In this document: positions 5,840-33,734 of the stretch, in pieces
Layout of the letters: every line of letters begins with the position of its first letter
Position numbering within the stretch: the first letter of the stretch is position 1
Source of the DNA: Bugula neritina
Taxonomy: Eukaryota; Animalia; Bryozoa
Direction: 5' to 3'
DNA length: 64,000 nucleotides
Assembly (NCBI GenBank): GCA_964035545.1
Contig: OZ037769.1
Location: 4,321,929-4,385,928, forward strand
Notes under the pieces: generated by a model
Databases searched by the model: none
Seen by the model: only the letters and a program-made list of their open reading frames with translations
What the model was told of the DNA's origin: nothing
Made by a program: the position numbers and the translations under genes

Positions 5840-6012
5840 AGCAGCCGTGGTCTAGGGGTTAGAGTGTTTACCTAGTAAACACAAGGCTCTGGGTTAGAGC
5901 CCAGAAAAAGGCCATTGGTGATGTTAGGAAGAGCATCCGGTCATAATTTCTCCTGTGCCTCATATTAGAGGTTTCTCACAGGGATAGTGACTATAAACTT
6001 GCGCGAGTTTTT
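5840..6012 (+). mobile_element. tRNA-derived SINE copy (internally deleted)
   Basis: Head agcagccgtggtctaggggttag (A-box-like), body cattggtgatgttaggaagagcatcc and tail tctcacagggatagtgactata are shared with copies at 21241, 39734 and 47657. Confidence 0.8.
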
Positions 6013-8109: not shown

Positions 8110-8425
8110 GAACTATTTTTTCTTTTTGTTTTGTCAAACAAAATCTGGAAGCATCTTGAGAGTTTATCACGTCCTACAAATAATAAACAAATATCAGTGT
8201 CCCAATCTAAGTTAATGTTCTATGTATAAAATAGTTTCAAACTTGCAAGGTAACAGCTTACAGCTCAAGTATATACGTGTTTTAATATTTTGGTGAAACT
8301 CAATGCTTTTGCAGTTTGAAAAATAACTCATCTATACTGAATTTGTTGGGGCACCCTTTTAACAAAATTTTTATTAGCAAAATGACCACTGATGAGTGAT
8401 AGCTACCTGCAAAATTTTTGGGCTC
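8110..8425 (-). pseudogene. Decayed Cys-domain exons downstream of the gene C stop codon
   Basis: caaacaaaatctggaagcatcttgagagtttatcacgtcctaca (~8135-8178) matches the 64-nt exon of gene B (caaacagattccggaggcaacttgagagttttccacatcctaca). tgcagtttgaaaaataactcatctatactgaattt (~8310-8345) matches its 131-nt exon (tgcagtttgaggcaaacagatctacatactgaattt). Both are diverged. Confidence 0.7.
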
Positions 8426-8640
8426 TAAATAAAATAAACTAAGACACACCTTGTAAAGATGATTAGCTATATAAATTATTGCATTTGGAGAAAAAAGTGC
8501 AGGTACTAGTGGCAAAAATGAGTTTTACAAAGTGCATGGTGAAATATTATATTGACACAGGAAAAAGCAGTATTATCATAATAATGAATGTGTATAATTA
8601 AAAAAATGATAAGGTTTTTGTATGAATGTGTTTACAAACC

Positions 8641-11600
8641 TTAGATATCACGAAGTTTTCCTCTCAAAATCATTTGAAATAATTTCATCAAAATAGATTC
8701 AGAATCTGTAAAAAAAACAAGAAATTATGTTAACAAAATTTTGAAAGGTTTCTAAATATGTTAATAGTTATATATTGCATGCATTTGAACATTATAGTTA
8801 TACTTTTTGCATACGTGTTTTCCAATTATTTGAATGTAATAACATTAGATAAAAATTAGCAAAAGTTTTTTTATTATATGTAATATTTCAGATTGATAGC
8901 AAGTAGCAAATATGCATGATAAAATTTGTCAGTAACCGCACACAAAAAATGTTTTGACTAAACATCAAAAATGGCTGCATGTAAATTCAATACCAAAAAC
9001 AAATGTACATATTGATATGTGAGTAGAATATATTTACCTTGTATTCCACGGTCATATTCTTCTTCAGATTCTTCAGATTCTTCACCTCTTCCTGTATTGA
9101 AATAATTAAATTATTAAAGGTAAAACTTACAAATTAAGTACTCAGTGTACATGCAATAATAGTTATATTTTTATGTTTTTGATTCAGTGACTTTTAAAAA
9201 AAATTTTGTATTCCATCTCAACTTTATATGATGATTTTGTTTAAAAACTTTTTTTGAAGCCACAATTAGAGTAAAAAACTTATGTTACCTTAAAAAAATC
9301 TCTGCACTGTGTAAATATACAATTTTGAGAAACTAGCTATTGATATGTAATTTCAATGTAACTACTATATGTATTACGTATAGCAACAATTTCTTTCAGG
9401 ACCTATATATACCTCTTCCTGCATTCAAACAAAAATAATCTTTTATCAGAAACTACAGAGGAGCTATTCAAATAATTCATACATTTTATTACTTTCAATA
9501 AACCTTTTGTTTTAACAAACCTATGAATATGATGTATAGGCTGTAAGCTAATTTCAGCAATATATACATAATATAATAATATAACATATTTACCAGGATA
9601 TCTACGCCTATTTCTTCTAGGTCCTTCGCCTCGTCCTACATTAACAAACAATAATAATAAACTACCAAAGTCTGGCAAATATTAGGTACCCAAATGTTTA
9701 ATTCATAAATATAATATATTTTGAAAATATAATATAATATATATAAATATAATAATTATAGCTATATGTATTATTGTACATAAATTAACAATTATTTAAC
9801 AAATATACCTAAATGATTTTTCAACAAGCAAAAGCATTATAGAGATTTTGAGAATGACAAATTTATGTATAGTATAGAACCGTATTTAAATATCTTTGTA
9901 AATAAAAAATTCAATAAAATCCCACATTGAAATGTATAAAGTATACCGCATATATACTTACCATGCATTCTGCGGTCAAAATATCCCTCATTTTCTTCAC
10001 TTCTTCCTACATTTAGTCAGAAATAATATATTAGGCTTTCAAAATAGATAATATTATAGATAATTAACTAATTTACATGGTAATAAATTTGCTATTGTAT
10101 ATTATTAATTCAATAAATATTTAAGGAAAAACCTAAATTTATATTAAATATATTGATTTCTGCCATGTAAATATTAATGTTTTTGTGCATAATATCCATC
10201 AAGATGTTAGTGTTTATTTTTTATAAATACCTCTTAATTTTGGTTTTCAACAGCAATTAAATTTTACCAATTTACAAACTTACGAATTATTTTATAAAGC
10301 AGTTTATACAACTGCATATAACTATATTACATTGTAATATTATTAGGATCAATTATGTAAAAAATTTTCAAAATATTATCATTATGTAACAAATTACACT
10401 GCTTTCTGTATAAACAATGAACAAGAAATTTTAGGTCAACATTTTTTTCTTGTCACTTTTAGGTACTAAAGGTAAAAGTATATATACTCAGTGTAAATAT
10501 TGATAATTAGGTAAACACATATAAATTACCTAATAGTATTTGACGAATACTTGTTGCTGGGCTTTCATCTCTCTCTGCAATAATAAACAATAATATAGTT
10601 ACCATAAATGTTTAGTTAAGTGCTGACAAAATTTGCACATAGATGATGTAAAAACAGATCAGTATGTTTTCAATTTTATGTTAATTTGAATTAAATTCTG
10701 CCTTACTCACGCAAGAAATTAAGGCTTCTATATTAGTAATGAATTTATACTCAATTAATAAAATCTGTGTAAATATGTAAGTATAGAAAGGCTAACACAC
10801 ATTGAAATATAAATATACAATATCCTTATCTTGCATTCGGTGGCCTTCATTTTCATCACTTCTTTCACCTCTTCCTACATTTTAGCAATAAGAATATTAT
10901 ACGAAAAACAAAAACATAATTACTCAAGAATCCGTGAATACTGCTGATTGTTTAAGAGTTTTATTTTAAAAAACTTGAAATAAATAAAAGCTAATTCCAC
11001 CTCAAAATTAAATTTATTAACTCTAGCAACAATTTACTATATAGTTAGTATTTCTGTACAGCGTACTTACCAGAATATCTGCGTCTATTGCCTCTATGCT
11101 CTTCACCTCTACCTATATAATACATGTTTTAAAATTTCGGAATGAAAAACTACCAAATCAAGAAAAAATATATAAAATATATAAGCAGATCTCAAAATAA
11201 TGTGTAAATATAAAATACCAAGAAATGAATTTATTGAAATGTAGTTATTATATAATACTCACCTCGCATTTCACGGTCATATTCTTCTTCAGATTCTTCT
11301 CTTCTTCCTACATTTGAACAACAATGATAATTATCCAAATTTGATAATTCAAGTTATCAAATAATTTATATGTTAATAAATATGCTACTGTATATTAACA
11401 ATTTGATAAAATATGTAATACATCATAGAGTGTTTCTATTTCATATAACTGAATATATTTGATTGAGCATTGAAAAAAGTACATATTATTTGCTGTTTCT
11501 ATACAACATATGCCTACCAAAATACGGGAGTCTATCTTCTCCAGACTCTTCCCCTCTTCCTGTGTTTCAACAGCAAGCAGGTTTTACCAGTACTTACAAA

Positions 11601-14600
11601 TTAGGTATAAAATGTTTCACTCATTTAAATTTTTATGATAGTATAACATGGACTCAGAATAAAAATCAGTTACCCAAGTAATTTATACATCTTATTACTT
11701 CAATAGAAATTTTATTTTAGCATAGAACTATTATGGATATATATTATGAGCTAATTTCAACAATATTTATAATATAATAATATAACATATTTACCAGGAT
11801 ATCTATGTCTAGTTTCTCTAAGGCCTTCACCTCTTCCTGTAACATTCAAGCAATAATCATACATTGCAAAATTTGGCAAATTATGTACCCAAATACTTAG
11901 TTAATAAAATAATATATATAACATAGCTATGTATTATTGTACATAATTATATTAACAATTATTTAATGAATATAACTAAATAATTTTTCAACAAACAAAA
12001 AGCATTAAAGAGATTTTGAGAATGATAAATTTATATATAGTATATAGAACCGTATTTAAATATTTGTGTAAATATATAGCTGTTGTATTGTATGTTGACT
12101 GTTATTTTATAATTGAAATAATTAAATTATTTTGTAACAAACATAACATATTATAGATGCTTTAAGATAATATTATCATTTTGATATTATATAATACTGT
12201 TTGCTATTTATAGTAATAGATTTTTCTTGTATACTAGTAAATCTCAACACTTGGTGCAAGTACATGATTCTAACAAATGCACACATTAATACATCAACAA
12301 ATACATAATTACCAATAATTATTCGGTGAATATTCCTCTCAGGTTCACCTTCATCTTCTCTTCCTGCATTCAAACAATATGTTTTTTACAACCAAATCCA
12401 AGCTCTGCTCTTATAAAATAATTATTTCGAGAAATTTACATATTGAAATGTACATATACAATATATACCTACATTTGTTGATATATTATAAGTACAATTC
12501 ACTTACCTCGCATGCGGCGGTCAACAATTTCTTCACTCTCTTCACCTCTTCCTAAATTTAAACAATATTAATATCATTTTCAACAAAATCGACAAACTAT
12601 GTATTCAAATAGTGCTTACATTAAAAATTGAAAAATTTTATTTCATCAACTCAATAGTTCTTGCAAAAACTTAAGATTTTGGAATGAGAAACTACCAAAT
12701 CAAAAAAATATATATAAAATATATCATCAGATCTCAAAATGGTGTGTAACTATAAAATACTAAGAAATGTATCTATTGAAATATAGTTATTATATAATAC
12801 TTACCTTGCATTTCATGGTCATATTCTTTCTCAGATTCTTCTCTTCTTCCTATATTTGAACAACAATGATAATTATCCAAATTTGATAATTCAAGTAATC
12901 AAATAATTTGTATATATTATGTTAATAAATACGCTACTGTATATTATCAATTCAATAAAATATTTAATACATTATAGAATGTTTCTATTTCATATAATTA
13001 AATATATTTGATTGAGCATTGAAAAAAGGACATATTACTGCTGTTTCTATACAACATAGTTACGGGGATAAGGGCGTCTATCTTCTTTAGATTCTTTCCC
13101 TCTTCCTGGGTTTCAACAGCAAGCAAATTTTATCAGTACTTACAACTTAAGGTATAAAATATTTTACACATTTATAGTTTCATGGTAGTATAATATTAAT
13201 TTAAAATAAAAAAATAGTTACCCAAGTAATTTTTACATCTTATTACTTCAAAAACAATTTCATTTTACTTAAACTATTATGGGTATATATTATGAGCTAA
13301 TTTCAACAATATTTATAATATAATAATATAGCATATTTACCAGGATATCTATGTCTAGTTTCTCTAAGGCCTTCACCTCTTCCTGTAACATTCAAGCAAT
13401 AATAATAAATCACAAAAGCTGGCAATTTATGTACCTAAATATTTATTTCATAAATATGCGGTTGTAACATTGTGTAGCATAATTTAACAATTTTTTTATT
13501 GATATGACTAAATGCTTTTGTAATAAACATAACATATTATAAATACTTTAAGATAATATTATCATTTTGATATTATATAACACTGCTTGTTATTTATAGT
13601 AATACATTTTTCTTGTATATTATTAAATCTCAACACTTGGTGCAAGTACATGATTCTAACAAATGCAACCATTAATACGTCAACAAATACATAATTACCA
13701 ATAATAATTCGGTGAATATTCCTCTCAGGTTCACCTTCATCTTCTCTTTCTGCATTCAAACAATATTTAAATGTTTAAAAAAATAACACATTGATTGCTC
13801 ACACACTCAATTCGTTAATAACTGCATTGTTTTATTTCAACAATTCATCAGCTTTTCAAAACACTTATATCTTGTCTACACTACTGAGCAAATGAATAAT
13901 TCACAATTCAAGACCATTTTTAACAATAAGTCAAGACGTTTAGAGTGGCAAATTGCTCTTGTGTATAGGCAAGTCTCTACACTCTGTGTAAATATATGAA
14001 TCTGAGAAATGCTGATATTATTATGCATGTAAGTATTTTAGTATATGATATTTACCTCGCATTATGGGCTCATTATTTGCTTCAGAGTCGTCACCTCTTT
14101 CTACATTTAAACAAAAGCAACGTCTTATCAAAATTGACAAGGTAGTCAACCAAATATTTATACAATAATGAATACATAGTACTGAATACTACAAAAAAAA
14201 TGAAGTAAAGTGTTATATATAGTGTGCTTTTTAAATAATGTCATAATAAGTTTATATCAAAAATCTTTGTTGCCATGCTTTAAAAAACACAATAAACTAA
14301 AGCTTGTATATTAAAAGATGCATAATATGTTGTATAGAGCTTAGCCTAAATACTGTTTATGTATAAACAGTCTAGTGACTGCTTATAAGTGATGATGGGT
14401 AGCCAATATAAATGATACAACCTGTCAGTGACTACATATACCAACAGATTATGAACTGAATACCAAAACTATCTGTGAATTTAATACCACAAAACAAACT
14501 CACACACCAATATGTAAGTGGAAAATACTTACCTCTCATGCGGCGGCCATAATTTTCTTCATTTCTTTCACCTCTTCCTAAATTTGACCAAAAATATCAA

Positions 14601-16058
14601 AACTTGCAAAACTTAACTTTGAGAATTTCACAATTGATTTTCAAAAACCTCATGCATTGATGATTTTATTATTCTATTTCATTGATTTAATAACAATTTT
14701 AACTTCACAAACCTGTACTGAACATAAGCTAATGCAGGTAAATTATTGATTTAAAAAATTGTAGATTTTGGTGTTTCTATTTAACACACTTACCAGGATA
14801 AGGGTATCCATTTTCTCCAGATGCTTCACCAGTTTCTGTAAAATGAATTTACCAGAATTTACAAATCAGGTCATGAAATAGCTGATACATTTTGAGTTAT
14901 GTAATGGTATTTTTTCAATGTACTACAATATATTTTTAGCTATTATATGAATTATATAGCTAGAGCTGCTATTGTTATAATCTGAAAATTAAATAATGGA
15001 ATATTTAACAAATTTAAGCGTTTTCAATTCAAGAGTTGCCACAGAATTGTTTAGTATTATATGCATGATCATCTATATAATAAATATTATCATAATTATT
15101 AAAAAAAATTCCTATTAAAAATTTCATCCAAAATTTAAGCAAATCCCAACACTCTGTGTAAATTATATATAATTTTGACAGAAGCACATATTCAAAGGTA
15201 AGTACCATGTATTATTTACATGTAAGTACAACTTACCTCGCATTCTGCCGTAAACACCTCTTTCTTCTGCTTCACCACTTCCTATATTTAAAAGATACTC
15301 AAGAATTATCACAACTTTAAAACAGTTCATACATGTAAAAATTCTTTACTCTACATTGAGAGATAGGTAAAGTAGTGAAGAAATTAAGAAAAGCCTGTGT
15401 TGTTGATAAAAAATTTAGCAAAAGAAATTATATTCTTGCAAATATTTTAACCAACGCCCCAAAGCAAAATTTCATAAAATAATTAAATAACTTAGGCTAT
15501 GTAAATTTCTTTTCTACTGCTCTTTAATGCATTTTAATAGTATTTTTGACATACTATTGCCATATTTATTTTTTGTAGTTGGCAATAAGTAATACTGCAT
15601 CACATTTAAAGAAATATCATTCATATGTACTTTTGTATAACAAAATATAATAACAAAAAAATATATAACAAAATATAATTTTATAATGCATTTCTAATTA
15701 CAATATATATTAATAACAAATACCAAATTATTAAAACTTACCGGCAAACAAGGCAACTGCACATAATGCTATGATCAGTCTTACAGACACTGAAAATAGA
15801 TATCACAGTTATTAAAATTTATTGCGTATGCTGAGGAAACCAAATAAGAAGCGTTTTAACTTATAGCTTGTTATCTAATTGTTGAAAACAAAATGCTTTC
15901 TTTCTGATGAAGCCCATGCAAAATAGTTTTTTCAAAAGTTTCAAGTGTGAAGATATTAAAGGAAATTCTAGATAGATCAACAATAATTTTGAACTAAATA
16001 TATTTACTCCAGTTAAACAGCAAGATATATATATAGTGAAGAATATATACTTACACAT
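8641..16058 (-). CDS. Gene C: secreted Gly/Arg/Glu-rich repeat protein built from ~18 intact symmetric mini-exons, ~308 aa; Cys domain truncated
   Basis: Exons (5'->3'): 16055-16058, 15742-15789 (MLSVRLIIALCAVALFAG), 15237-15281, 14794-14835, 14533-14577, 14056-14100, 13699-13749, 13341-13382, 13064-13105, 12805-12849, 12507-12551, 12313-12363, 11795-11836, 11518-11559, 11263-11307, 11071-11112, [10830-10874 donor AT], 10530-10574, 9962-10006, 9594-9635, [9413-9418 degenerate], 9038-9091, 8641-8705 (DSESILMKLFQMILRGKLRDI*). All intact cassette exons are phase 1-1, 42-54 nt, multiples of 3, stop-free and AG/GT-bounded. Examples: GRGERNEENYGRRMR, GRGEGLRETRHRYP, GRREESEEEYDREMR. Confidence 0.82.
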
Positions 16059-16143
16059 TCTGATTTTTAAACTCTTTGTCTTCTAAGATTTGAGAAACAC
16101 TCCTCTTTCTGAAGAAGTATGAAACATTCAACGAATCCATTCA

Positions 16144-16545
16144 CTTATATACAAAAACTTGAAAAAAATTATTTTTAGCCATCTGATGAAATTTCTATGA
16201 TCTCAGATTATTGATAAATAATTTGGAGGACAAAATACAGACCAGCTGCTAAATACTAATTATTTTATGATAAATCACAGACAATAGTACGTATTTTATT
16301 TTATATGGAATATTAGATACTGTGCTGTATATTAAATAATGCAACTGTTATATATTCATAATACTAGTATCATTGTTTGCCAGCTGTGTATCTTTGTTTG
16401 CCTACAATGTCTTAGAGCCTAGACTATAAGTATAACAGCACATGTTTCATAGCCAGCTGTCTACTTTTTATTTGTCTGCATGATAAAATTGTGGAAGTTG
16501 ATAATTAGTTCAGCGATACTAGAAGCTTGAACTAATACCATTTGA
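16144..16545 (-). promoter_or_regulatory. Putative promoter of gene C: TATA (TATATAAG, 16144-16151) and three CAGCTG E-boxes (16243, 16381, 16454)
   Basis: The 5'UTR and upstream blocks align with the region upstream of gene B (33735-34290). Confidence 0.6.
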
Positions 16546-17175
16546 TAATAGGATTATACTTTAGACTATTGTTATTATAGCTGTTATGTAATAACTACTG
16601 TGGCATTATACTGCCAGCACAAAAAAAAATTTGCAAACTTTTTCCCCTATATAGACTCGAACTACGAAAAGATAAAAGAAGTTTTAAAACTCGATGTGGT
16701 TTATAGAAACAACAGAGGTACCAGTACGAATCATTCAAAGTAGCTTATAGTTTGAAGTACATTGAGACAGACTGCTAGAAGAGTTAATGGGGACACAGAA
16801 TTGCTATGCTTCAGCATTCGACTATGGTATCTGGACAAATAAAAAATGATAAATCTCAAGTTGCATCAATCGCATGATATGCCTTTGGTAGGTTAAGACA
16901 TTATGTCTACATTTATTAGACGGGAAATAAAATAAACTAATCATGTTTGTTTGTCCAAGTTAAGAACTGCATAGTATGTTCCTTTATCAAGATTTAGGGG
17001 GGGCAGAAAAAGTACTGCTTCTTTACCGTGGGTGTACCAGTCCAACCTTGCCATCCTTTATAACGCAACAAATTGCTAAAGCCCTGTGAAGCCTATTAAA
17101 AGTTGCTTCACATTAGCTGGTGAAAAAAGCATCAAATCATATATCATAGAAATTAATTTTAAACTTAGAATTGCC

Positions 17176-17245
17176 CCCACCCAGATTCAGGCCACAGACC
17201 TTTGGTTTACTGCAAGCAGTCGCGCTAACCAATTACACCACAGGG
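17176..17245 (-). mobile_element. Degenerate tRNA-like SINE head
   Basis: The minus strand shows gtggtgtaattggttagcgcg (A-box-like) followed by a degenerate T-arm (ggcctgaatctggg). It is not a clean cloverleaf. Confidence 0.45.
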
Positions 17246-18380
17246 ACTACTGGGTAAACTCAAAACTATATCCCACCCAGCTCTCTAAACTCTATTGACT
17301 CTTCTACTACTCCTTCAGTCTTTAGGCTTTTCTGGCTTCTCAACTCTCAAAGAGTACTACTATTTTACTAAAAGCCAAAGTAGCTTGTAAAATATTTGCC
17401 CCTACTTGGATTTGAACTGCAAATTTTTGGCATGCTATCTCACAACAAATGCTATTTGGTAATCTCCACACTACCATACTGTTTACACCTAATTATTTCT
17501 GGTTCCAGACTAAAACAACTATAACTACTAGTTTTTCTCAACTTACTCTAGCACTTTTACTGCCGTGTAGATTATCTCAAATGCCTCCCTATAAAAAAGA
17601 TACAAAATGAGGTTCTGTTAAAATGAACAGGTACCCATTCCTTGCAAATTTTCAGGCCAAGTATTTACTATCCTCATTTTAGACACCCTACGTAATGGTA
17701 TGTATTATTTGCTCCACAAAGTTGCGAACAAGCACCTCTAGAATCTAAAATCTATGCGAATGGAGTGATCATTGTGAGTGCACTGTACAATCAGTATAGC
17801 TAAGAATTTATGTACACTTGCTAAATTATAGGGCAAAACCTTTACCTATCCCTATAATCAAAGAATCAGTTGGAAATGAGGCTTTAACTGTTTATTATGG
17901 TAAATATATTTCATTTTGTGCGGAACATTTAAGCTGGTTAAATAGTACAAAGTAGGTGAAAAACAACATACATAAAATATAGCTTTAGAATATATAGCTG
18001 AAAGCTTTTTATGGCTTTTCCATTAATAGCTGATATAGCTACATTAATACAATACAATATATCACATCAGCTATCATTTCCAAAAGGCTGCACATGAGAG
18101 TCCTAGATTCAAAAACTCTTAACAAATAAATTAATTTGTTAATCTTGGTGAAATTATTTTAGATTATTACTAAACAACTTAAATCAGTATAGTTTTTCTG
18201 CAAGCCATGCAAACCAGTTTCATTTCAGATAGCCAACTTTCAATTAGACGACCATCAATATTTCACTTAGACGCCCCCAACTGGACTATACTTCTATTTA
18301 AATGACTTCTTTAAAAACATTTGGAATTAAAAATTAATTATATTTGATACTAATAAGTTGCATTTATTTTGATTTTATGT

Positions 18381-18450
18381 GCATAGGTGTTTAACTGAAG
18401 CCATGCATAGGTGTTTAACTGAAGCCATGCATGGTGTTTAACTGAAGCCA
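18381..18450. repeat. Short minisatellite, 3 copies of ~24-nt gcataggtgtttaactgaagccat
   Basis: Directly visible tandem copies. Confidence 0.85.
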
Positions 18451-19097
18451 TATGCATAACATGACTCATTGAAGCCATTGCTCTAACAGTTTACTGAAGT
18501 CATGTTATCCATAAGATGTCTATTTTCTTAAATGATATAATATAATAGAATTTTATTAACTATTTTTCTACATTACATACATTCAATTTAAAATTTTGAA
18601 GTAGTCAAAGGTATTTTAATATATATATCATCTGCACACATATTTGATAGCAATATCTAGGGTCATCTCACTGGAAATATAGCCTATCTAGATTGACATC
18701 TGCAAAGCATTCCAAAAACTTGAATTATATTGATAGCTATTTTTATTCTGAAAACTGCTAAAAGTAAAATTGCGTCATAAAAAATTAAAGATTTCATTAT
18801 TTTACTCTTTTTTAGATTTTTAAAAAGTCCCACTCAAAGTTTTCATATTCAATAAATTTAATTTAGACAAAAAGCATGCAAATGCAATGCCAGTTGTATA
18901 GAGTTATGATTTGAAGTAAACATTGAATCAGTATTGGTCATGTATGTTTGTTTACGTTATATTTCAGCAACACGCAAACTTAAAGAGCTAAAAAATTTGA
19001 AGTGATAACTATTAAGGATAACATAACTTTATATAGAATGTTATTGTGTTTCTGTTAACATATATATTTCTGGTATATATATGTAATTATGCATGTA

Positions 19098-19510
<413 letters not shown>

Positions 19511-19937
19511 GATATTACCAGAAAGCAACAGTTTGCATTACTTATGTGTTATACATTGCTTTTGCATTTTGCTAAAATATACTGTTAGGTAGTTGTTTGG
19601 TATATAGTGCTACATGTATACAATACTGATCAAACTATTTAAACCAATGCAGTTTCATATAACCTACGTGATCAACAAGTCAACAGTGTTAATGCAATGA
19701 AATTTATTTGAAATAAGTTCAAATTAGTAACATGACAAAAATTTTAATAAAAGAGTTGTTTTAAATATGTAATTGATATTTTCAAGTCTATTAGATTTAA
19801 GTTAAAATAAGAGAGTTTAATCTCAACTATTTTGTTTGCAATTAAAAATATGGTTTTGAAGGGGGTTTGGGGTGATTTAATAACAATATTTTAGTCAAGC
19901 TGCCACAATTAGCCTACAGGTATATTAATAAGAATTA

Positions 19938-22900
19938 TTATTTTTTGTAAATGGAGCAGTGGGAAGGTAAAACAAGTTTCTCATTGACATAATACTGATT
20001 ATAATGACAGACACTTGGGAATACTTTTTCCATAACCAACTCCCGCATCTCCTCAGCCAATGAACATCCTCTCTCAGCTTTGAGAAAGCATCTATTTGCC
20101 AAGTACTTTTTTTCACTAAAATAAAAGATTTAATAGAAAAGATTAGAATTAATTAAACATAATATTAACAACAGTCTATATTCATGGTATATGGCATATG
20201 CACCCAATAGCACATTCTTTATGAAAGCATTTCACAGGATGTTACAATTAGGCCGAAACCTTTTTGATATATATAGTGTGTTAAACAATCTCCGTAAGAT
20301 TGCACTCATTTCATTGCAAAATCCTATGTAATAAATTAATGAAAATTAAAATCAAACCTACAATGAAATGGGTGTAATATTATAGATTTACATGTACATA
20401 AAACTTAGATCATGTGAGAAGGTTATATTGTAAACTTCTATTGCAAAAAATATGTATCAAAGCACACAATGCTTTTCTGATAATTTATTACTTTAAAGTT
20501 AAAATCTTAAGAAGAATAAACACTTTTTTTAACTACAGCCAAAGCATTGTTTGATAAGAGAATGAAAGATATCAATTATTTTAAAATGTTGAGGTTTTTA
20601 GCCAAGTTGATTGGATGTGAAAAATGTTAAAGGTTAAGACAAAATCTATGTACTAATTAATTAGGTAGATAACATCGTAAGAGACATTATAGTCAGCATA
20701 TAACTACACATCTACAATAAAGATCAGGTAACTAGAAACTCTTACCACATAAGTGTAGTTCCACTTTTGTCAAACAGATTCCGGAGGCAACTTGAGAGTT
20801 TTCCACATCCTACAATGCGCAAATAAACAGTCCAGATCTTTCGAATTATGTTGACTTCAATTTTTTTTCAGAACAAGTTTTAAAAATCAACATAATATCG
20901 AAAAGCTGTTGCTTACCATATTGAGGGAATTCGATGCCTCTGCAGTTTGAGGCAAACAGATCTACATACTGAATTTCTTGAAACATTTTTTGGACAGGAT
21001 CTTTAACAACACAGTCACTAAGAGCTTCTTGCACAAGTTTTCTGGCACTGAAAAAATTAATACAATATACATGGATGCTACAAAGAATCTGAAAAGTCAA
21101 TTATATCATTTTAAAAAGATGAAAACAAGATTGAATCTTAGATACTTAACAAAAGTTGGTCTTGTTAAGTGTTCTTTGCTATATATCAACATAAAGTACA
21201 TTGGAATTTAGATAATAAGATTTATACAGTATAATAGAAAGCAGCCGTGGTCTAGGGGTTAAAGCGTTTACGGGGGCATGGATTCGAGCCCGGACAAAGG
21301 CCATTGGTATTGTTAGGAAAGGCATTCAGACATAAATTACTCCCGTGCCTCATTTAAAAAACTCCTTTGCCCGTTTTAACAAAAAACCTTCCATCAGGGG
21401 TTTCTCACAGGGATAGCGACTATAATAAATTTGCATGAGTTTTTATAATAGAAAACATGTTAAAAAACAGAGGAATACATGTTTTACTTACAAACCTTAG
21501 ACAATCATAATGACTTCTTGTCAGAACCAATTGTCTAAATCGGCAGAACGTGTTGGCCAGGTTGCTTTCACAAACTACAAAACATTACCATACATTAAAA
21601 ATACTATAAAAAATGTAGAGTTAACCAAATAAATTTTGTTAGAAAAGCTATAGATTTATTGCATGCAGTCATAAATAATAGCTGCATGAATATTGCATGT
21701 ATATTATTTAATAAGTATGATTGTTAGCTAAATTACATAAAAAAATGTATTTATATTCATATTTTAGATTGATACTGGTATAATAACTGCACATGATAAT
21801 ATTACTTAGTAACTGAATATATAAAAATTATTTAATGAAAATTAATGTTACCTGTTAATTCAAGTACAAGAAACAAATACATATTATATTGAAATGTATA
21901 AATACAACATATTTACCAGAAGTCCCATAACTGTATTCATCAATTTCAACACTTCCTGCAAACAAACAATAACGAACTTTTAAAGATGCAAGTAAATAAC
22001 TATTCCATACAGTCATAGAAACGTTGTTAAAAATCAATTATATATAACCTTGATAGAATTGTATAGCTTTTTATCAATTTTTCAATTAATGTAGTTTAAT
22101 TCTGCTTTAAAGTAGAAAATTTTAGTAGAAACTCTGTTAATGAAAAACTTATATGACATAATTAGATGCTGTATATAGCGACATATGAGCAACTCTGAAA
22201 ATTGCATATAATATTGATATGTAAGTTTGATGTACTTACTACGTTTTCTGCTATAAGTTTCTTTACTTTCTTTACTTTTTCCTACAATCAAACAATGATG
22301 AATCATTTATATTAATATGGGAAGACAATGTTTTATTATATAAAATAGGATCTACATATTATGTTTGAACTAGTTTCAATTCTAATAAAAGCACAAACTT
22401 ATTCCAAAGTAGATTTCATACATACCCTGTTTTTTGCTTTTATTTTTTCTATTTCCTTTGCCTTTTCCTGCATTTTAAAAGCAACAAAATTTTACAGAAA
22501 TTCACAAATCAAACACTCAACTCGATCATCTAATATATAAAAATATTTTTGTGGTAAGATATTGCTTTAATAAATTTTAAAAAATATAGCATATGAGCAA
22601 TATTAGAAAAATTATGGATTTATGCTGCTTTAAAAAGCCACAATAAAATATTTGAATAAATAGCAGCTTTATGCTGTGTATATGTGCACGTACCATGGCT
22701 TTTGCCCATGTGTTTTCTTTTCCCTTTACCTTTACCTTTTCCTTTTCCTGCATTCAAGCAATAATACAATTTTACCCAAACTCACAAATTAAGTGCCCCA
22801 TGAAAATAGCTCATGCATTTCTTGATCTGATTACTTTATGTTACCGATTAAACAATATTTATAGTATTTGATCAAGTTTATAATAAATATTATAATTTTA

Positions 22901-25900
22901 TTTAAATTTTCTTTAACAAACACAATGAAAATTAAGCACTAACAAAAGCATGCAAGATTATGTTATCAGATTTTAATATTGTGTGTTAATTCATCACTCT
23001 GTCAAGCACACAAATTTTTATACAAACCTAAACTACTCACCATGTTTTTTCTTATTATCTTCTTCACTTTTTTCAACACTTCCTGTAATTAAATAACAAT
23101 AATATTTTACTAAAACTGGCTCATCAAGTAATAAATATAATATACACACAAATTCATAGGTATGGTATATTATTAGGTCAATATACTCTAAACGATGTGG
23201 TTACTGTATCAGCTGATAATTGTTGCTGCGTCAGCACGGGTGCTGTTTGGCACGGATGCCTATGTATTGTGATTCACTTAATGAAGGATGAATAGATGGA
23301 GGACACAGAAGCAGGCCACAACTCTATTTTTGTCTATTGCCAACAGTATATTTTATAAGACAGACTTAGACTTGAGCTCACATTCATATTTAGACTCACA
23401 CTCATACTTAAACTGTAACCTATAATTGTGAAAATTACAAACATATTGTTAACTTAACATTAATTACATAACTGACAAAACATTTAGTCAATGAAGTTTA
23501 AAACAAAAGATAATATAACACTTGATACTTACAATTATTTTGACAATTAGGAATAGATTGCCTGCATCTTTAGCAGGAGGAAAATTGAGCTACACTGACT
23601 CATCGAACAAAAACTGTCAGTAAATAGCTATCGCGAAAGCTTTCACATATAGCTTTTGTTACACAATGGTTTTTGGAAAGCTGCCAAAAAGCTACTGCAA
23701 CAATGTGTATAGTATATCTGATCATGTCTATATTATTCAATTTACTTAAATTGGTTGCTTGAAAAACCAAAATTAACTAATTACTATAATTTATATTAAG
23801 TTTGATGAACTTACTACGTTTTCTGTTATAAGTTTCTTCTTTGCTTTCTTCTTCACTTTCTTCATTTTTTCCTACAATCATGCAAGCAATAAAGTTATTT
23901 ACCAAAACTTATAAATTAAGTACAAGAATAGCTCAATAAAATTAAATAGCTACATTGCAAGTATATTATCAAGTAAAATATTATTATATAAAAATTATAG
24001 CTCAGTACCACATTTATAAGAATTAATATCATTGAATTAAAGACATTATTAGAAACAAGTTTATATGGTATATTAATATATATATGGCTAGATCTATTTA
24101 TAAATACTATACGTTTAAAGTTCCAAATTAAAAAAAAACACATAATGATATGTAAGTACAGTTTATACTTACCCTGCTTTTTGCCAACATGACTTCCTTT
24201 ACCTTTTCCTGCATTCAAGCAACAATAAAACTTACCCTAACTAACATATTAAGTATATCCATGCATGCAAATAGGTATCATCATTATATATAGTAACTAT
24301 CAAAATTTTTTATCATCATTTGAACAAAATCTATCAAATTTTGTAATGGGTTATTAAATTTGTTATAAATATAACTAAATGTCACAATTAAGAATTAATA
24401 AAATCAGACTAATATGATATATAAGGACATCACCATAAATATGACAAATGCACATGTTGATTTATATCTAGAACATTCCTACCAGGCTTTTTGTCCATCT
24501 TGTTATTGTCTCCTTTACCCTTCCCTAAATTCAAATAACAATACATTTTTCACCAACTCAAACACCAAATAAGTCATCATGCATTTAAACAGATTGCTAT
24601 GGTATATAATTTGTTAAAGTATCAATAGCACATAACATAAACATAAACTTGAATAATATTTTTTAACAAATAGACTACAATAAATAAAGACTTTAATACA
24701 AAAGCAACTTTTTATCTTATGTTAAGAAAATATCTCAATATTATATGTATGAAGCCCTCAGTTTGACAAAAACTACATACAATTGATATGAGAGTACAGT
24801 TCATGCTCACCATGCTTTTTGTTCATGTTCTTTTTATTTCCTTTACCTTTTCCTGCATTCAAGGAATAATAAAGTTTTACCAAAACTAACAAATTGAATA
24901 CTCATGCGCATAATTCGAGCATTATTCGATATAATAATATTGCATATTATCAACTCAAAAATGTGTAAAAGTGACAATATAAGTTATACAGTAATTATAC
25001 ACTGCTTTAACAACTACAAAAAATCTTCAATAGAAAAAAAATTATACAAGAAAATCTTAATATTCTGTGTAAATATCAATTCTGCCAAGTGTACATATTG
25101 ATAAATAAGTAATATATACTCACCATGCTTTTTGTGGTGGTTCTTTCTATTTCCTTTGCTTTTTCCTGTGATCAAACAATGGCAGAAGATATTAGAGATA
25201 AAAGAGAATTAAAACCAGAAAAACTATTTCTCATTTAGGCATTATATAATTGATTTTTGCTGACTTTCATTGCATGCTTGTTATTCTTCACTTTTGTAGC
25301 AAATTATTATTATTGACACTACTCACTAAAATCGTTTAAATGTTTAAAACTCGAACACTAAGTAAACTGCTATAAGTAAACAATGTCTATATAATTACCA
25401 TGCTTTTTGCCCACATTTTTCCTATCTGCTTTGCCTTTTCCTATAACATTCAAACAATCATAAAAATTTACTAGATTTAACAAACCAAGTAGCCTACTTG
25501 TGCAAATAGTTCATACATTATTAGATAAATAAATTCTTTAATATTATATATTTATTGAAATATATAAAATCTTTACTATATTATCAAGCTTATAAAAAGT
25601 ATAATTGGATATTGATTAGACAACCACAATTAAAAAGAATAAATTTAATAAAAGCAAATTATTAGTGTATTATATAAGCAAATCTCAATACTTTGTGCAA
25701 ATGCATAATTTTAACAAATGTACGTACTAATTAGTAAGTGTAACATACTTACCATGTTTTTGGGGATGATTTCTTTTAGCTGCTCCACCTTTTTCTGCAA
25801 TCAGCCAATAGGAAAAATAAAATAGTTCAATAATCAAGGCAGATAACTACATGAATTTTAGCAAGTTTATAACAACAGGTCTTAATATATATTCTCAATC

Positions 25901-28900
25901 AGATAAAATCAACACTGTGTGTAGATCCACAGTTTTAACCATTGAACACATTCTTAAGTCAGTTCAATAAACTTACCAGAGCTTTCAGAACTATTATCAG
26001 TTTCCTTTTCATCATCTGCAGTCAACGAATAATGAAATTATATCAGAACTGACAAATTAGCTAGGAAATAATTCATATATTTATCAATATACCAAAATTA
26101 TGTTAATTGAAAGATGTTTCAACAACTGCAATAAATACTTTATTATAAAGAAATATAATTTATATATAATCACGATAGGCAGATGTTATTATTTTATGTG
26201 AATCCATCATTTTGACAAGTCCACATATTTCTAAGCAGGCATAATTTATTTACCCATATTTTCAAGACTACTATCTTCTGTTTCTTCATCGTCCCCTGGA
26301 TTAAAACAAAAGTAAAATTTTATCAGAACTGAAAAGGTAACTATACAGGCACAAATATAGTTCCTATATTTATTTCAGTATTATTATGTGTTAGTGAGGC
26401 TACACCTTTAGCAAAAACAATAAATAGGTATATATGATTATTGTCAAATTGACATTTTATAATATGATTCATTGTTTAAAAATTATAATGATCTGACTAG
26501 AACGAATTTGATGAGCAAATATAAAATTCTCACCAGAATCTCTGTAGTTATTTTCAGCTCCTTTAACACTTCCTTTATTTAACAAATATGAAATTAAATT
26601 ATTAAATATTTTATGCATGCAAGTTATTGTATATTATCTACTCAATAAATTGCTGTGAAATCTTTAGTTTACATTACTATTTATATGCTAAGAACACATA
26701 CGTGCATACATATCATTTTGAGTGCTGCAATTTAATATTATTTAAGTCTTAAGAGATATCAATAACTATTGAGTGTAAAGTCATATTTTTGACAAATGCA
26801 CATATTGATATGGAAACATAATTTCTCCAATTGGGATTCGAACCAGAGGCCTCTGGCGTGCAAGCAAGTGCGCTAACCACGAGTAATCATAACACCACGT
26901 ACAGATATGTGAGTACAATGCACTTACTAGTCATTCTGGGGTAAGTATGCTCTTCAATGGTCTCACCTGCATTTAAAGAATATAAACTTTCAGAACAGAC
27001 AAATAGGCTACTTCAATAGCACATTAATAATTATGTAATATTAAATAGATAACGCTATAAAAGCACAGCATATATTCATGATAAATTTTGCTATAAATAT
27101 ATTTGCATCAATGCTGCTTTTTCCACTATAACAGCAAATTAGGATTTTTAAAAATAACCCATTCAGATTGCATAAATACATAATTTTGAAAAATTCACAT
27201 ATCGAAATATGTAAGTATGCCATATACTTACTGTTTCTTGTTATATAAGTATGTTTTACTGGTCCTTTACCTGCATTTAAAAGATATACAAATTTTTTTG
27301 AGTTGACATATCAAAACTCTTGCATATAGATAGAGCTATAAAATTGTTCTGTACTATCAGACTGTTTGAACTCTATAAAAATCTTGAACGAATACGGCCA
27401 ATTTGATAATTTATCTAATAATTGAATGTCGCTTTAACTGACACCATAGATATAAATGCTTCATTAAAAAAGAAATTTATCGTCTACAAATCGTGCGTAA
27501 ATGCACAAGTCTGACAACTGCAAATATATTTATATGTAAACACTGTATACTTACCATGCATTTGGTAGTCTTCATATCCCTTATGGCCTTCCCTTTTTCC
27601 TACAACAACATAACATTTTACTAAAAGGGTAAATTAGGTACTTCAAAATTCACACATCAAAAATTATAATAATGTAAGTTTGTCATCAAACTTATAATAA
27701 ATATATTTGATTGCTGTTTATAAAAAAAGAAAATGAAATACGACTTCTATGCTAGCAATTCTGTATTGAATACAAGCGCATATTTAAATATTGTGAGTAA
27801 CTGCTTAAGTCTGACAAACTCAAATGTTGATAAATATGCCTACCATGATTTCTTTCAGAGCTTTCTCTACCTTTACCTTTACCATGACCTTCACCATGAC
27901 CTTTGCCGTTACCTTTGCCGTTACCTTTTCCAAGACCTTTACCTTCACCATGACCTGTACCATGACCTTTGCTGTTACCTTTTCCATGACCTTTATCTTT
28001 ACCTTTGCCATGACCTTTACCATGACCTTCACCATGACCTTTTCCTCCTCCTGTGAGTAAACAATAATGATACTTTATCAAAACTAACAAATTAAGCACT
28101 GATGCAAATTTTTCACACACAAACAGATATTATTATTGCATAATATTGTTAGGCCAATCAAGTCTATGCAAATATATAGTGTACGTTATCTTTTTTATAA
28201 TACATATAAGTAAATGCTGCTTTAGCAATAAAAATAAGTACTTTAACAATAACAAATGTGAATAATATATGAGCAAATAACAGATTCATGGGTGAATTTA
28301 GAAGTCTGAAAAGTTTACATGTTAATAAGTACGTATAATTCGCACTTACCATGATGTTTGTGAGTATTTTCTTTACTTCCTCTACCTTTTCCGGCTATAA
28401 AAAAGTCAAATTTCAAAAGAACTAACCATTAAGCACCTATGAAAATATCTAGTCAAAACCTTATGAAGATAGACAACATATAGTATTATTATTACACATT
28501 GTTATATAATATTATACAATATTAATGACTCAAACAAATCTGTGAAAATATATTGTAGTTATCAAATTTACAATAACTAATAAGTAAACGCTGCTTTAGC
28601 AAATAATAAACAAATAGCAACAAATGTGAATTGTGTGTAGATAAATTTCAGTTTCGTTGATGAATTTATATAGTTGCAAAATACTCATGTTGGTAAGTAA
28701 GCAAAACAGGATTATACCTTGTTTTTTGTGATCATCTTTTCCAGTTCCTTTATTTTTTCCTGTAACCAAGCACAAGTAAATTTTGCTAAGACTAACAACT
28801 ATTACACGCCCACAAAAATGTACTATACATTTATACACCTTATTGCATATATTAACTACTTAAGCATATCTATAACAAAATATATAAGTAAATGCTACAT

Positions 28901-31900
28901 TAGCAACAAGAATTATAAATACACTTTGATAGAAAAATATATTCAAATATTAGGCGCATCTGAATATTATATTGTAAGTAAAGTTATAAGCTTAACATGC
29001 TGGCATATAATTATTAAATGAGAACCACCTGGATATACATACTTACCATGCTTTCTGGGAGTATGTTTTCTAGTTCCTTTTCCTCGCCCTGTAATCAAAA
29101 TAAACTCGTCATACAGCTATCTATATTTTTTGTAAAATTGTTATTATATTCTATTATATTAAATTATATTGTATTAAGTTATATTTTACGTTATAATATA
29201 GCATTCAGGTCGTATTATATTATATTGCACCATGTATATTATATTTGATTGCTATTTTAACTATTAATTATTGTCTAACAACCATCACAACAGATAAGGA
29301 GTTTAATACAAGTATAAACAAATGTATTGTTTATATAAGTAAATCTCAATATCGCATGCAAATTTAACACTCTAACAAATGCACATGCAGATAAGTAGGT
29401 ACAACATGCTTACCATGCTTTTTGTGATTGTCCTTTTTAGTTGCTTTGCCTTCTCCTGCTTTAAAATTAGTATAATTTTACCAAAATTGACAAATTAAAC
29501 ACCCAAGTAGGTTACACATGCATGTACAGCTATATTATTGCATATTATCAATTCACTATATTATATTTAAATCTATAGGACATAAACATTATATTTATTA
29601 TAACTGAATGCTGATTCAACTTTTAACCCTACTCACTCAAGAATCTTAATAAAAAAGCTGCAATAGAAACAAGCTCATGTTGCATTTCAGAAGACTTCAA
29701 TATCGTGTGTAAATTCATATAATTCTGCACCAAATTCACATATTGAGTACAAAATACCAACCTTCTTCATTGCCAGTACTTTTTTCAGTTGTTTCATTGT
29801 TGTCTGCTGGGTTCAAAAAAAATGCAGTATAGTACCAAGCAGTTCACAAATTCAAAGCTATAGATCAACATTATTATAGGTGGATGTCGCATATTTCCAT
29901 GTATGTAGGACATACTTAATAGAAATCGTGTAACTAATATTATATGTTGTGTAAATTTCTAATTCTAATTATTGCACACATGTTTAAGTAAGTACAGTAT
30001 ACTTACCAGTGCTTTCAGAACTATTTTCATCAGTTTCTTCCCTATCATCTACATCTAAAGGAAAGTTAACTAACAAGTTACCTACCCAAGTATTTCGTAT
30101 ACTAAACGCTGTTTTAACAACCAAAATAAATATTTTTATAAAAGCAAATATGCATTGAATATAAGCAAATAGTGATAATTTTAGTAAATTTATTATTTTG
30201 AAATATTAATATATTTTCAAGCAAGCAAAATATTATATCTACCCGTCATTCCAGTACTACTCTCTTCAGTTTCTTCACTGTCGCCTAGATTAACAAAATG
30301 TGAAGTTTTATCAGAACTGACAAATTAGGTACACAAATAGTTCTAATATTTATACTAATTTAATTGTGTGTTAGTAATGCTTCACCTATTGTATTTGAAT
30401 GCTGCTTTATCAAAAACAATAAATAAATATATTATAATTTTTAACAAGTTGACATTTTATATAATGCTGAATAAAAGTTTATAGTTCTAACAAGAATGCA
30501 TATTGATAAGGAAGAAAAAGTTTCTCACCAGAATTTCCGTAAGTATTTTGTTCAGTCTCATCAACACTTCCTTCATTTAAAAAATTGATAAAATACAACA
30601 GAACTGGTAAGTTATATATTAAAATAGTACTAATGCATTGGTAGATCTATAAAAACTCGATCTTTTGCAAAATTATTATAATATCAATTTAGAAAACTCA
30701 ATTGAATGCTGATTTAACAATCATGATAACATAAAGAGTTTTACAATAACAAATATATGTTACACATATTCTTCACTTTTGTTTGTAAATTCATAACCTT
30801 GGAAACTTTACATAATATTAATATGTAAGTTATACACGATTTACTTACTTGGTAGTCTAATATAAGTATGCTCTTCAATAATCTCACCTGCATTCAAAGA
30901 ACAATATAATCTTTCAGAACTGACTAATTGATTAATCAATTAGCTTTAAATACAGTGATACGTACATTAGTGTATAATATCAAAGTTAAAAGATTCCATA
31001 AAACTATAACACATATAATCCAATTTATAGAAGTCTATTTAAATATAGCATCACCGACTACAGTAAATTAAAAGTTTTTTAAAAAAATTTTATATTGCAT
31101 TGATATTGGTATTGCTTTTGATTTTGTATTGATAATAATTTGGTATTGGTATTGTAAATTTAGATTCCAGAAAAACACAGATATTATTATTTGAATACAA
31201 AATACTTACCAAGATTTCTGCGGTAAGCATTACCTTCAGATCGCTCCTCTCCTCCTGTATTCAAACAAAATGTTACCAAAAATGACAAATTTAAATAGAA
31301 TATTATAATATTTAAACTTTGTAAGTAAATATAAAATACCAGGAAATTCATTAATTTATATGCAAGTACAACATTTTTACCTTGCATTTGGTGACCATAA
31401 CTGTCTTTACTCCCTTCACCACTTTCTACATTCAAACAACAAGAATTTTTTACAAGAACAGGTAAGGTAATTATTAATCAAATAATCTGTAAACATATTA
31501 TAACCATGTTATTGTATCTTACCAACTTTCTATTTGATATAACTCAATCACTGTTTTAAATCTATGATATATATATATATAGAATTTGTAACTACGTAAC
31601 ATATAGGAACATATTTCAATTACTGTGTATAAATACTGCATACAGAATTCTGACAAACACACAAATATTTATGTGTTTACTATAAGTTTACCTTGCATTC
31701 CATAGTCAGTTCTTTCGCTTCTTCCTACATTTACCAATAATAATACTCGGTTAAAACTGACAAATTAAGTAATTGAATAAACCATAAAAGTCTAGCCTGA
31801 AATTAATATAACTAAATGTACTTTTTGAATTTCAATTTAAAATATTTATGACAAAATCATAGATTTTTATAAAAATAACCAAACCGAATAATTGCATTTG

Positions 31901-33734
31901 CCTTCCAACATTAAACAATATTATTTTCTACTAAGGTTGACAACTTAAATGCTCAAATAGTTTAGATACATTTACAAAAAAGCTACTGTATATCACTAAT
32001 TTAATAAATTTTACAAGAATATCACTGTAGCCTATGCTTTAAATTTTATGTTGAAGATATTTGTTGCATTTTTGATGAAATGAACTAAAGTAAATATAAT
32101 TTATATAGCAATACATTAATACTATATATATATATAGGCAGTTTTCAATATCTTTTGTTATTACATAACTATAGAAAAATTTATACACACACTGTTTATA
32201 TTTGGTGATTTATTTACCTTGATTTCTGTAGCCATAATATCCTTCATTTCTTTCACCTCGTCCTACATTCAAACAAGAATAATACTTTATCAAAAATAGC
32301 AAGTTGAGCACTAAAATAGCTCATTGAGCAACGATCTCTGTTTTATAGTGTTTTACTATTTAGATTTATAAATTAAAGATGCTATATATATAACAAAGCA
32401 AACTTTTAATCTTTTATTCAACATATTTAATTGATGCTTTAAAAAGCACAAAAAGCAACAAATTATGTTGGTAACAAACTTATATTATAAATAACCACAT
32501 TTGTTTATTGCGTGTAAATATATAGGCTAATTAGAAAATTGCTCATCAAAATTGATATGCAAGTACAATATACGTACCTAGCATTCGGTTGCCATAATAT
32601 AATCTTTCAGGTCTTTCATTGTTTTCTAAATTTAAATAATACAATCGTATAACTATTTTATTAAAATTGACAAACTATATGTGTGCTCAAACAGTGCTTG
32701 TCGACTCAAGATTTGTTTTAAATTTAGTCTAAAATTAATATTTTTTTTAAATTTCAAGTTATAATATTTATAAACAGGTCACAACTTTGTGTGCAAATAA
32801 ATTAATCTAGATATTGCGTGTAAGTTTGATTTGCCTACCTTCCATTCTGTATCCATAATATCCTTCATTTCCTTCACCCCTTGCTAAATTTAAACAGCAG
32901 CAATGTTTTACAATGGCTGACAAATCAAGTACTTAAATATATTTTCATGCATCTATAAATATACTACTGTATATTATCGATTCAACAAGTTTAGCAAAAT
33001 TGCAGTATGCTTTGAATTTTATATTAACTATATTTATTGCTTCTTTATTGAAACACAATAAAGCAATACATTTACAGCAACAAAGTTATAATATATATAA
33101 ACATGCTTCAATATTGTTTGTTAATACACAATTCTGAGAAATTCCCATACCTAGATATCCATAGTAGTTAGGTCTTTCTGCTCCTTTGCCCCTTCCTACA
33201 TTTACATCATAATGAGATTTTATATAATTTTTTTTTATACAATTTTGTTTTGCTACAGCTTTTATATTCTTATTTGTAGCAAGCAATATTCATTATTGCT
33301 AAATATGAAATGATATAGTATATAAAATATTACAACAATATTTTCTAAAATATGATGTTTTGAATTTTTATAGATAATTTACAAATGTTAGATAGCTAGT
33401 TCATCGGAGCTTACCAGCAAATAAAGCAAAGGCACACAGCGCTATAGTAACTCTCACAGATACTGAAAATAAACATAGAGTCCAATGCAATTTCTGATTC
33501 AAAATAACTTTTTGTCAATTAAAAGAAAAACACAAAAGCATATAAAAATGAAATACTTTTACAAAGTGTGGTGGGCAACAATGATACGCATTGTTTGTGT
33601 GAGACTAAATAAGAATTACTTTTACCAAATTATTCTGTCTACAACAGAACCTTGTAAAATTTTGCATAATAAAACTACAAATTAATACATCTGGATTTAA
33701 CCATTGTAAATAATATAAATATATACTTACACAT
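19938..33734 (-). CDS. Gene B: secreted block-copolymer-like protein, ~719 aa; signal peptide + 35 symmetric cassette exons + C-terminal 12-Cys domain (41 coding exons)
   Basis: Exons 33731-33734 and 33415-33462 give MLSVRVTIALCAFALFAG. Cassettes: 33151-33195, 32839-32883, 32578-32625, 32218-32262, 31692-31724, 31381-31425, 31210-31254, 30849-30887, 30529-30570, 30243-30284, 30007-30048, 29762-29803, 29414-29455, 29047-29088, 28718-28759, 28350-28394, 27844-28050, 27555-27599, 27232-27270, 26928-26966, 26534-26572, 26254-26295, 25977-26015, 25753-25794, 25399-25440, 25124-25165, 24811-24852, 24483-24524, 24173-24208, 23815-23871, 23041-23082, 22694-22747, 22426-22467, 22240-22281, 21917-21955 (all phase 1-1, length divisible by 3, stop-free). 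Cys-domain exons: 21496-21574, 20917-21047, 20746-20809, 19938-20115 (79/131/64/178 nt, the same as gene A). Total 2160 nt, open frame. Confidence 0.88.
21241..21443 (+). mobile_element. tRNA-derived SINE with 11-bp target-site duplication, in an intron of gene B
   Basis: Same family as 5840, 39734 and 47657. B-box-like gattcgagccc. TATAATAGAAA occurs at 21230-21240 and 21444-21454. Confidence 0.88.
26813..26903 (-). mobile_element. tRNA-like (TGC anticodon-loop) SINE fragment inserted in a gene B intron
   Basis: The minus strand reads gtggttagcgcacttgcttgcacgccagaggcctctggttcgaatccc (B-box GGTTCGAATCC). It interrupts the conserved intron motif catattgatatgtgagtac, with gatatg duplicated at 26807-26812 and 26904-26909. 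Confidence 0.65.

Follow-up and report, generated by a model that had tools for sequence, protein, structure and literature searches.

Two genes on the minus strand of the Bugula neritina DNA analysed here consist mostly of small exons of symmetric phase, hereafter called cassettes. The analysed stretch, referred to as the window, is 64,000 nucleotides long and corresponds to C5:4321929-4385928, where C5 is the contig, in a genome of 216 Mb. Gene C carries 35 cassettes upstream of a cysteine-rich (Cys) domain, and gene B carries 20 cassettes and has lost the domain. Alignments of the cassettes and of the introns around them trace every cassette back to exon 3 in a small family of Cys-domain genes. 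Comparison with a second lineage shows that they are under moderate purifying selection and are individually dispensable over evolutionary time. By analogy of composition, we lean towards reading the products of B and C as secreted, disordered proteins with patterned charge that serve in an adhesive, the cuticle or the skeletal matrix. They would then be candidate components of the adhesive or of the skeletal matrix in a major fouling animal.

Cassette arrays of genes C and B

A splice-site scan of the minus strand placed exactly 35 cassettes between 33195 and 21917 in gene C and 20 between 15281 and 9038 in gene B, bearing out the 35 and about 20 exons proposed in a first-pass annotation of this DNA. 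Eighteen of the gene B cassettes are intact and two are dead: the donor of the cassette at 10874 is AT, and the cassette at 9418 is degenerate. As had been claimed, all 35 C and 18 B cassettes have AG/GT borders, a length that is a multiple of three and no stop codon in phase 1. Stops hit all 54 scored cassettes in phase 2 and 10 of the 54 in phase 0; phase 1 alone is fully open. All array introns are phase 1:1, and no skip junction in gene C generates a stop codon, in agreement with the earlier statement that any subset of cassettes can be skipped in frame. The size range of 33-57 nt given earlier holds for 34 of the 35 gene C cassettes, the exception being a cassette of 207 nt (28050-27844). 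The mode is 42 nt; most cassettes measure 39-45 nt, and only 2 of the 54 are 36 nt or shorter. The introns between them range from 126 to 732 nt and are typically about 280 nt long.

The gene C model that includes every cassette encodes 718 amino acids, of which the array contributes 551, corresponding to 77% of the coding sequence. In gene B, small symmetric exons account for more than 85% of the coding sequence, and the protein with cassettes would have 308 residues according to the inferred model. Exon 2 of both genes is hydrophobic and, as judged by inspection, encodes an N-terminal signal peptide that is kept in the second lineage. The proposed layout, in which a signal peptide and a Cys-rich domain flank the array, is found in gene C, where the array leads into four intact Cys-domain exons; it fails for gene B, the Cys exons of which have decayed. 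In run X1 (DNA, same organism), the only sequencing run that a search for the locus returned, intron-spanning contigs cover 27600-33500 with allelic differences only, the listed indels being intronic; hence, the array is not an assembly artefact in this interval.

The exons of gene C, all on the minus strand, are as follows:

33731-33734, minus: coding exon 1 (ATG plus 1 nt), with a TATA-like box at about 33828-33821; promoter, 5' untranslated region and exon conserved in the second lineage
33415-33462, minus: exon 2, hydrophobic signal-peptide core, 48 nt, phase 1-1; identical peptide in second-lineage record L027
31210-33195, minus: cassettes 1-7 (starts 33195, 32883, 32625, 32262, 31724, 31425, 31254), Tyr/Arg/Glu/Gly type common to gene B according to the tree, with L027 orthologues
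29762-30887, minus: cassettes 8-12 (starts 30887, 30570, 30284, 30048, 29803), acidic Glu/Asp/Ser/Thr block
27232-29455, minus: cassettes 13-19 (starts 29455, 29088, 28759, 28394, 28050, 27599, 27270), basic block, mostly Lys/His/Gly
27844-28050, minus: the 207-nt Gly-Lys-Gly-His repeat cassette; second lineage with two such exons, 240 and 117 nt
25977-26966, minus: cassettes 20-23, second acidic block, a four-exon duplicate of 30887-30007 (starred tree pairs)
21917-25794, minus: cassettes 24-35, Lys-rich block; the final one, 21955-21917, is of the ancestral GSV type
21496-21574, minus: exon 4, Cys domain, 79 nt
20917-21047, minus: exon 5, Cys domain, 131 nt
20746-20809, minus: exon 6, Cys domain, 64 nt
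19941-20115, minus: exon 7 to the stop codon; AATAAA at 19708

Gene B is organized as follows:

16055-16058, minus: coding exon 1 (ATG plus 1 nt), with a TATA-like promoter upstream; conserved in second-lineage record L022
15742-15789, minus: exon 2, signal-peptide core, intact in L022
9038-15281, minus: array, 18 intact cassettes of 42-54 nt, Glu/Arg/Gly/Tyr-rich, with the donor-dead 10874-10830 and the degenerate 9418
8640-8705, minus: exon-4 remnant, Cys-free terminal exon, stop codon at 8643-8641; the stop comes earlier in the second lineage
8110-8437, minus: decayed remnants of exons 5 and 6

Gene C introns also contain an approximately 500-bp repeat (23198-23704) resembling a miniature inverted-repeat transposable element, with about 40 scored copies (420 candidates) of 82-93% identity genome-wide, and a short tRNA-like piece at about 26820-26890.

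Descent of the cassettes from exon 3 of a Bugula gene family

Genes B and C belong to a family of about 23 paralogues clustered at C5:4.09-4.35 Mb, with one further member at 10.33 Mb. In 16 paralogues, exon 3 is single, has phase 1-1 and measures 27-75 nt. It follows the signal-peptide exon and precedes the domain, and its product covers the last part of the signal peptide and the beginning of the mature protein. The tally covers these 16; outside it are the members at C5:4.09-4.12 Mb and 10.33 Mb (four) and two more in which exon 3 is unplaced.

The introns around every one of the 54 cassettes can still be aligned with a single consensus, which indicates that the unit of duplication was exon 3 together with its intron. 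The closest paralogues share the unusual acceptor of the cassettes at their own exon 3: the purine-rich acceptor gap is real (p 1e-14) and inherited from exon 3 of single-exon paralogues. Genome-wide, the cassette-acceptor pattern matches B and C only, and a scan with a cassette model found no further array in the 200 kb upstream.

A tree of the cassettes, rooted at the midpoint, with deeper forks mostly unresolved and the 207-nt and degenerate cassettes excluded, contains a starred four-exon block duplication in gene C (30887-30007 and 26966-25977) and a recent one in gene B (11263-12363 and 12805-13749). Because B and C cassettes intermingle on a starred branch, the array had already expanded before the two genes separated. 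Exon 3 and its intron were duplicated in tandem, singly and in blocks of four exons, and gene B lost its Cys domain after the B/C split. The origin of micro-exon-array genes is usually untraceable; here, the ancestral exon, the expanded gene and a domain-less derivative adjoin and a second lineage is available for comparison, so that the route from an ordinary domain gene to a MEG-like layout (MEG, micro-exon gene) becomes visible. Our literature search found no paper combining "Bugula neritina" and "micro-exon".

The neighbouring gene A retains the ancestral state and, as the first-pass annotation had noted, has a single such exon. The two other family features of the window are:

2001-4276, plus: gene A, single-cassette paralogue, exons 2001-2004, 2123-2170, 2326-2367 (exon 3), 2579-2657, 2802-2932, 3051-3114 and 4099-4276
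65-230, plus: last exon of the next upstream paralogue

The orthologue of gene A, NCBI KAF6035548.1, joins the same exons. In the NCBI Bugula assembly (L025:17528-18608, L023), an additional tandem copy adjoins gene A that is absent from the window; family copy number therefore varies between lineages. The last intron of gene A contains a 114-nt inverted repeat of 85% identity (3423-3536 and 3761-3874). In a gap of the paralogue cluster, at C5:4293574 on the minus strand, an exon-like stretch encodes a Gly/Tyr repeat of the YGGGG type and is possibly part of another structural protein gene.

Database searches were run with single exons or returned protein ids; joined exons were used for gene A in a local tblastn against the window and for B and C in the analysis of composition. 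All family matches are Bugula records. Exon 5 matches only proteins of Bugula neritina and, in two JGI samples, contigs with the same locus; a metagenome scan for spliced or additional copies of gene C exon 5 returned nothing. No homologue of gene C exon 7 was found in a search covering 0.55-1.75x lengths only, and Rfam gave no match over 8000-35000. The single-exon paralogues are annotated, and no database protein joins cassettes to the domain; genes of this kind are missed by annotation based on open reading frames.

AlphaFold models the Cys domain as a mostly helical bundle (predicted local distance difference test score 75.7). By features, the nearest ESM Atlas clusters are DUF19/CPG4, with values of 0.90 and 195 shared features (P0004) and of 0.85 (P0011), and one paralogue is labelled DUF19 in UniRef. 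The domain may thereby resemble DUF19 (PF01579) and CPG4 (PF15481), which are helical and Cys-rich. It differs in that no member of the Bugula family matches Pfam, these two entries included, PF01579 does not match the cluster either, and searches of PDB, VIA-align and Atlas structures returned no relative, solved structures included. A DUF19/CPG4-like domain is a lead only. The first-pass annotation could assign the locus to no known family; the genes can be placed in a Bugula family of about 23 members.

Constraint, splicing and proposed function

Records of the second lineage are only 75-85% identical to the window, which suggests that the window comes from a different lineage within the B. 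neritina complex or from a close congener. The second-lineage gene C has 34 cassettes in the same block order, with gains and losses of whole cassettes and two Gly/Lys/His exons instead of one. The 28 orthologous C cassettes contain a single frameshift (one nucleotide missing from a run of A, perhaps through a sequencing error) versus about 27 expected from the rate in flanking introns, which is probably somewhat overestimated by the alignment. Each of their eight length changes involves a multiple of three nucleotides, and both splice dinucleotides are kept in 27 of the 28. The ratio of nonsynonymous to synonymous substitution rates (dN/dS) is 0.43 (0.30-0.61) in C cassettes versus 0.16 (0.07-0.33) in Cys exons; by cassette type, it rises from 0.27 in acidic cassettes to 0.61 in the Lys/His and 0.72 in the Tyr/Arg type, and the latter two intervals reach 1. 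Since the frame is kept and dN/dS is moderate, the C cassettes are translated and under loose constraint, which supports their earlier description as exons of secreted proteins. Individual cassettes are gained, inactivated or lost while the gene itself survives, which amounts to evolutionary modularity. For instance, the second lineage has one cassette with a lost donor and one of 44 nt.

Exons 4-6 of gene B have decayed to frameshifted remnants that no longer encode the cysteines: the frame of exon 5 is broken and its donor is gone, exon 6 is a remnant, and exon 7 gave no signal above shuffles. The domain exons are dead in both lineages, and exon 4 stops at differing positions. The exon-4 remnant itself (8640-8705) has about 90% identity between the two lineages, and both of its splice sites are retained; its reading frame differs. 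The promoter, the signal peptide and all seven orthologous intact cassettes keep frame and splice sites (one +6 change), and dN/dS is 0.49 (0.18-1.64). This conservation favours a function for gene B without proving it, and since promoter, signal peptide and cassettes are retained without the domain, the array itself is probably the functional part. Whether B is instead a decaying pseudogene copy, with C alone at work, is separate from the question of function discussed below. We consider this unlikely: the Cys exons and two cassettes are dead, donor 13105 is very weak and the dN/dS interval includes 1, yet the Cys exons died before the lineages split and the promoter, signal peptide and 7/7 cassettes have stayed intact.

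The C cassettes contain 18.5% Gly, 16% Lys, 12% Glu, 6% His, 4.5% Tyr, 1.6% Ala, 1.5% Pro, 5.6% hydrophobic residues and no Cys. The C array is rich in Gly/Lys/Glu/Asn/Ser/Arg/His, and that of B in Glu/Arg/Gly. Charge occurs in runs along the C cassettes (lag-1 autocorrelation 0.48, p 0.0004), and Ser-x-Glu sites exceed the shuffled expectation in both proteins (14 versus 6.6 in C, 9 versus 3.1 in B); Fam20C-family genes are present in the genome. In the C protein, a Tyr/Arg block would be followed by alternating acidic and Lys/His/Gly blocks and then by the disulfide-bonded helical domain. Such disordered block polyampholytes could self-associate or condense by charge pairing, Ser-x-Glu sites could be phosphorylated, and Tyr/Lys/His cross-linking could harden the material, or metal or mineral could be bound. 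If cassettes are skipped, this would adjust the length and charge of the product, as in tropoelastin, and would not supply a recognition repertoire. The structural or adhesive role suggested earlier is plausible. Several points weigh against it. Charge blocks and Ser-x-Glu sites are partly by-products of neighbour duplication, so that their p-values overstate independence, and the likeness of composition to adhesives is an analogy only. In addition, the gene B region is more conserved overall (flanks 86%) and the dN/dS interval of B spans 1, so that activity of gene B is only moderately supported.

The first-pass annotation had taken the symmetry of the cassettes as a sign of combinatorial splicing. 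This part was not supported, because exon 3 has phase 1-1 in all single-exon paralogues examined and symmetry is thus inherited; being ancestral, and since only symmetric exons duplicate in tandem without a frameshift, it does not speak for skipping. The sequence tests revealed no mark of alternative splicing. Cassette donors have constitutive strength (U1 pairing of -7.90 versus -7.83 kcal/mol, 63 family donors, p 0.88), and conservation of the flanking introns rises only slightly near cassettes (0.76-0.80 versus 0.63-0.79 farther out). By a crude test, in which a weak site would go unnoticed, candidate docking sites have duplex energies within about 1 kcal/mol of shuffles, with no conserved intronic block. 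A hairpin formed by a reverse complement 5-20 nt downstream of the donor, seen in many cassettes, was rejected as a general mechanism (0.57 versus 0.55 in shuffled sequences), and an SRRM4-type TGC in acceptors is not distinctive (24% versus 17%). We infer that transcripts include most cassettes; a low level of skipping is likely even on the structural reading.

A different function would follow if combinatorial skipping produced a pool of secreted variants for defence, recognition or symbiont interaction, as in the micro-exon genes (MEGs) of schistosomes. Any cassette subset is in frame and stop-free, dead cassettes are tolerated (10874 and 9418 in the window, the lost donor and the 44-nt exon in the second lineage), cassette content varies between lineages, the Tyr/Arg and Lys/His blocks evolve fast, and gene B has the corresponding layout of signal peptide, cassettes and short tail. 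We nevertheless regard this as improbable: symmetry is inherited, donors are not weak, introns beside cassettes are barely more conserved, and overall dN/dS is below 1, versus values above 1 in some mature MEG regions (PMC4350168). The broader proposal that the cluster, with about 20 one-exon-3 paralogues, C and B, preserves the full birth series of a MEG-type gene outside flatworms and also yields combinatorial isoform pools is tentative and, on the sequence evidence, rather doubtful; if true, it would represent an independently evolved protein-diversifying system in a bryozoan.

Still less credit is given to a polyprotein precursor, from which one antimicrobial or signalling peptide per exon would be freed at Gly-Arg/Gly-Lys junctions with C-terminal amidation. 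Gly-Arg or Gly-Lys starts 12 of the 18 B and 16 of the 35 C cassettes, B cassettes have an acidic first half and recurrent ends such as RMR, RMH and RYP, and a strong positive charge is common among C cassettes. However, the cassette start derives from the signal-peptide end of the ancestral exon 3, the common internal RR/KK pairs would cut within units, and the acidic blocks are free of such sites. A Dscam-like choice, in which one cassette would replace exon 3 and vary the N-terminus of the Cys domain, would fit the use of exactly one exon by the paralogues and the similar start kept by most cassettes. It appears highly improbable, as the crude docking test gave no signal and no conserved intronic block, the donor-hairpin lead failed, introns of 126-732 nt permit neighbours to be joined, and B has no domain to vary.

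Other features of the window and comparison with known systems

Outside genes A, B and C, the window contains the following features:

38090-40850, plus: CD225/dispanin gene (Pfam PF04505, E 7.8e-19), with a PQQGY-type proline/glutamine repeat exon at 38640-39084
49115-50461 and 51713-52009, minus: large exons of a long coiled-coil protein; Pfam coiled-coil matches sub-threshold only
63378-63629, minus: Sushi/CCP domain exon, Pfam PF00084 at cut-off
37230-37610 and 58500-58960: two islands of a degenerate, ACTCAT-like hexamer repeat; the second lineage also has the first of them
About 5840-6020, 21240-21445, 39740-39925 and 47650-47865: dispersed repeat resembling a short interspersed nuclear element

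Tropoelastin has about 34 exons and a Cys-bearing C-terminus. All splice sites of its gene (ELN) are phase 1:1, cassette-like splicing is possible and exon types alternate (PMC12554196). As a secreted low-complexity protein built from many short phase 1:1 exons, it is a closer precedent than MEGs. The two are not homologous: the Bugula cassettes are charged and hydrophilic, stem from one exon and precede a helical disulfide domain of 147 residues, and the alternation of hydrophobic Gly/Val/Pro with Lys/Ala cross-link domains is absent from the Bugula arrays. Moreover, skipping is established for elastin but only putative in the Bugula arrays. The Bugula array may work like tropoelastin, by analogy and not by membership.

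Schistosome MEG-1 to 25 share with genes B and C the signal peptide and the small symmetric exons that make up most of the coding sequence, and VAL-6 combines a micro-exon array with a folded domain (PMC4350168). Most MEG exons measure about 15 bp (range 6-81) and are separated by long introns; the Bugula cassettes of 33-57 nt lie within this range, mostly at 39-45 nt, their introns are shorter and they are recognisable paralogues of one ancestral exon. MEGs are apparently restricted to flatworms and their skipping is documented. Descent from flatworm MEG families is contradicted by the derivation of the cassettes from exon 3 of the Bugula family, and the independent evolution proposed in the first-pass annotation is thereby supported.

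The Xenopus integumentary mucin FIM-C.1 is another repetitive secreted protein with Cys-rich modules that is polymorphic by alternative splicing (PMC7177656). FIM-C.1 and FIM-B.1 differ in having Thr-rich glycosylated repeats and trefoil or vWF modules, with no homology to B and C. Among SCPP genes, caseins and acidic SCPPs have lost ancestral Cys-rich domains and carry Ser-x-Glu sites, which parallels gene B; their introns are phase 0. SCPP genes form a tandem cluster encoding secreted proteins without conserved modules, are prone to exon duplication and deletion, and are related to a domain-bearing gene, SPARCL1 (PMC13367325). They differ from the Bugula genes in being vertebrate and in the unrelated domain. 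Genes B and C are members of none of these systems (tropoelastin, FIM-C.1, SCPP, MEG/VAL-6); what is new here is the animal group and the visible series, which leads from one exon to 35 with the domain and to 20 without it.

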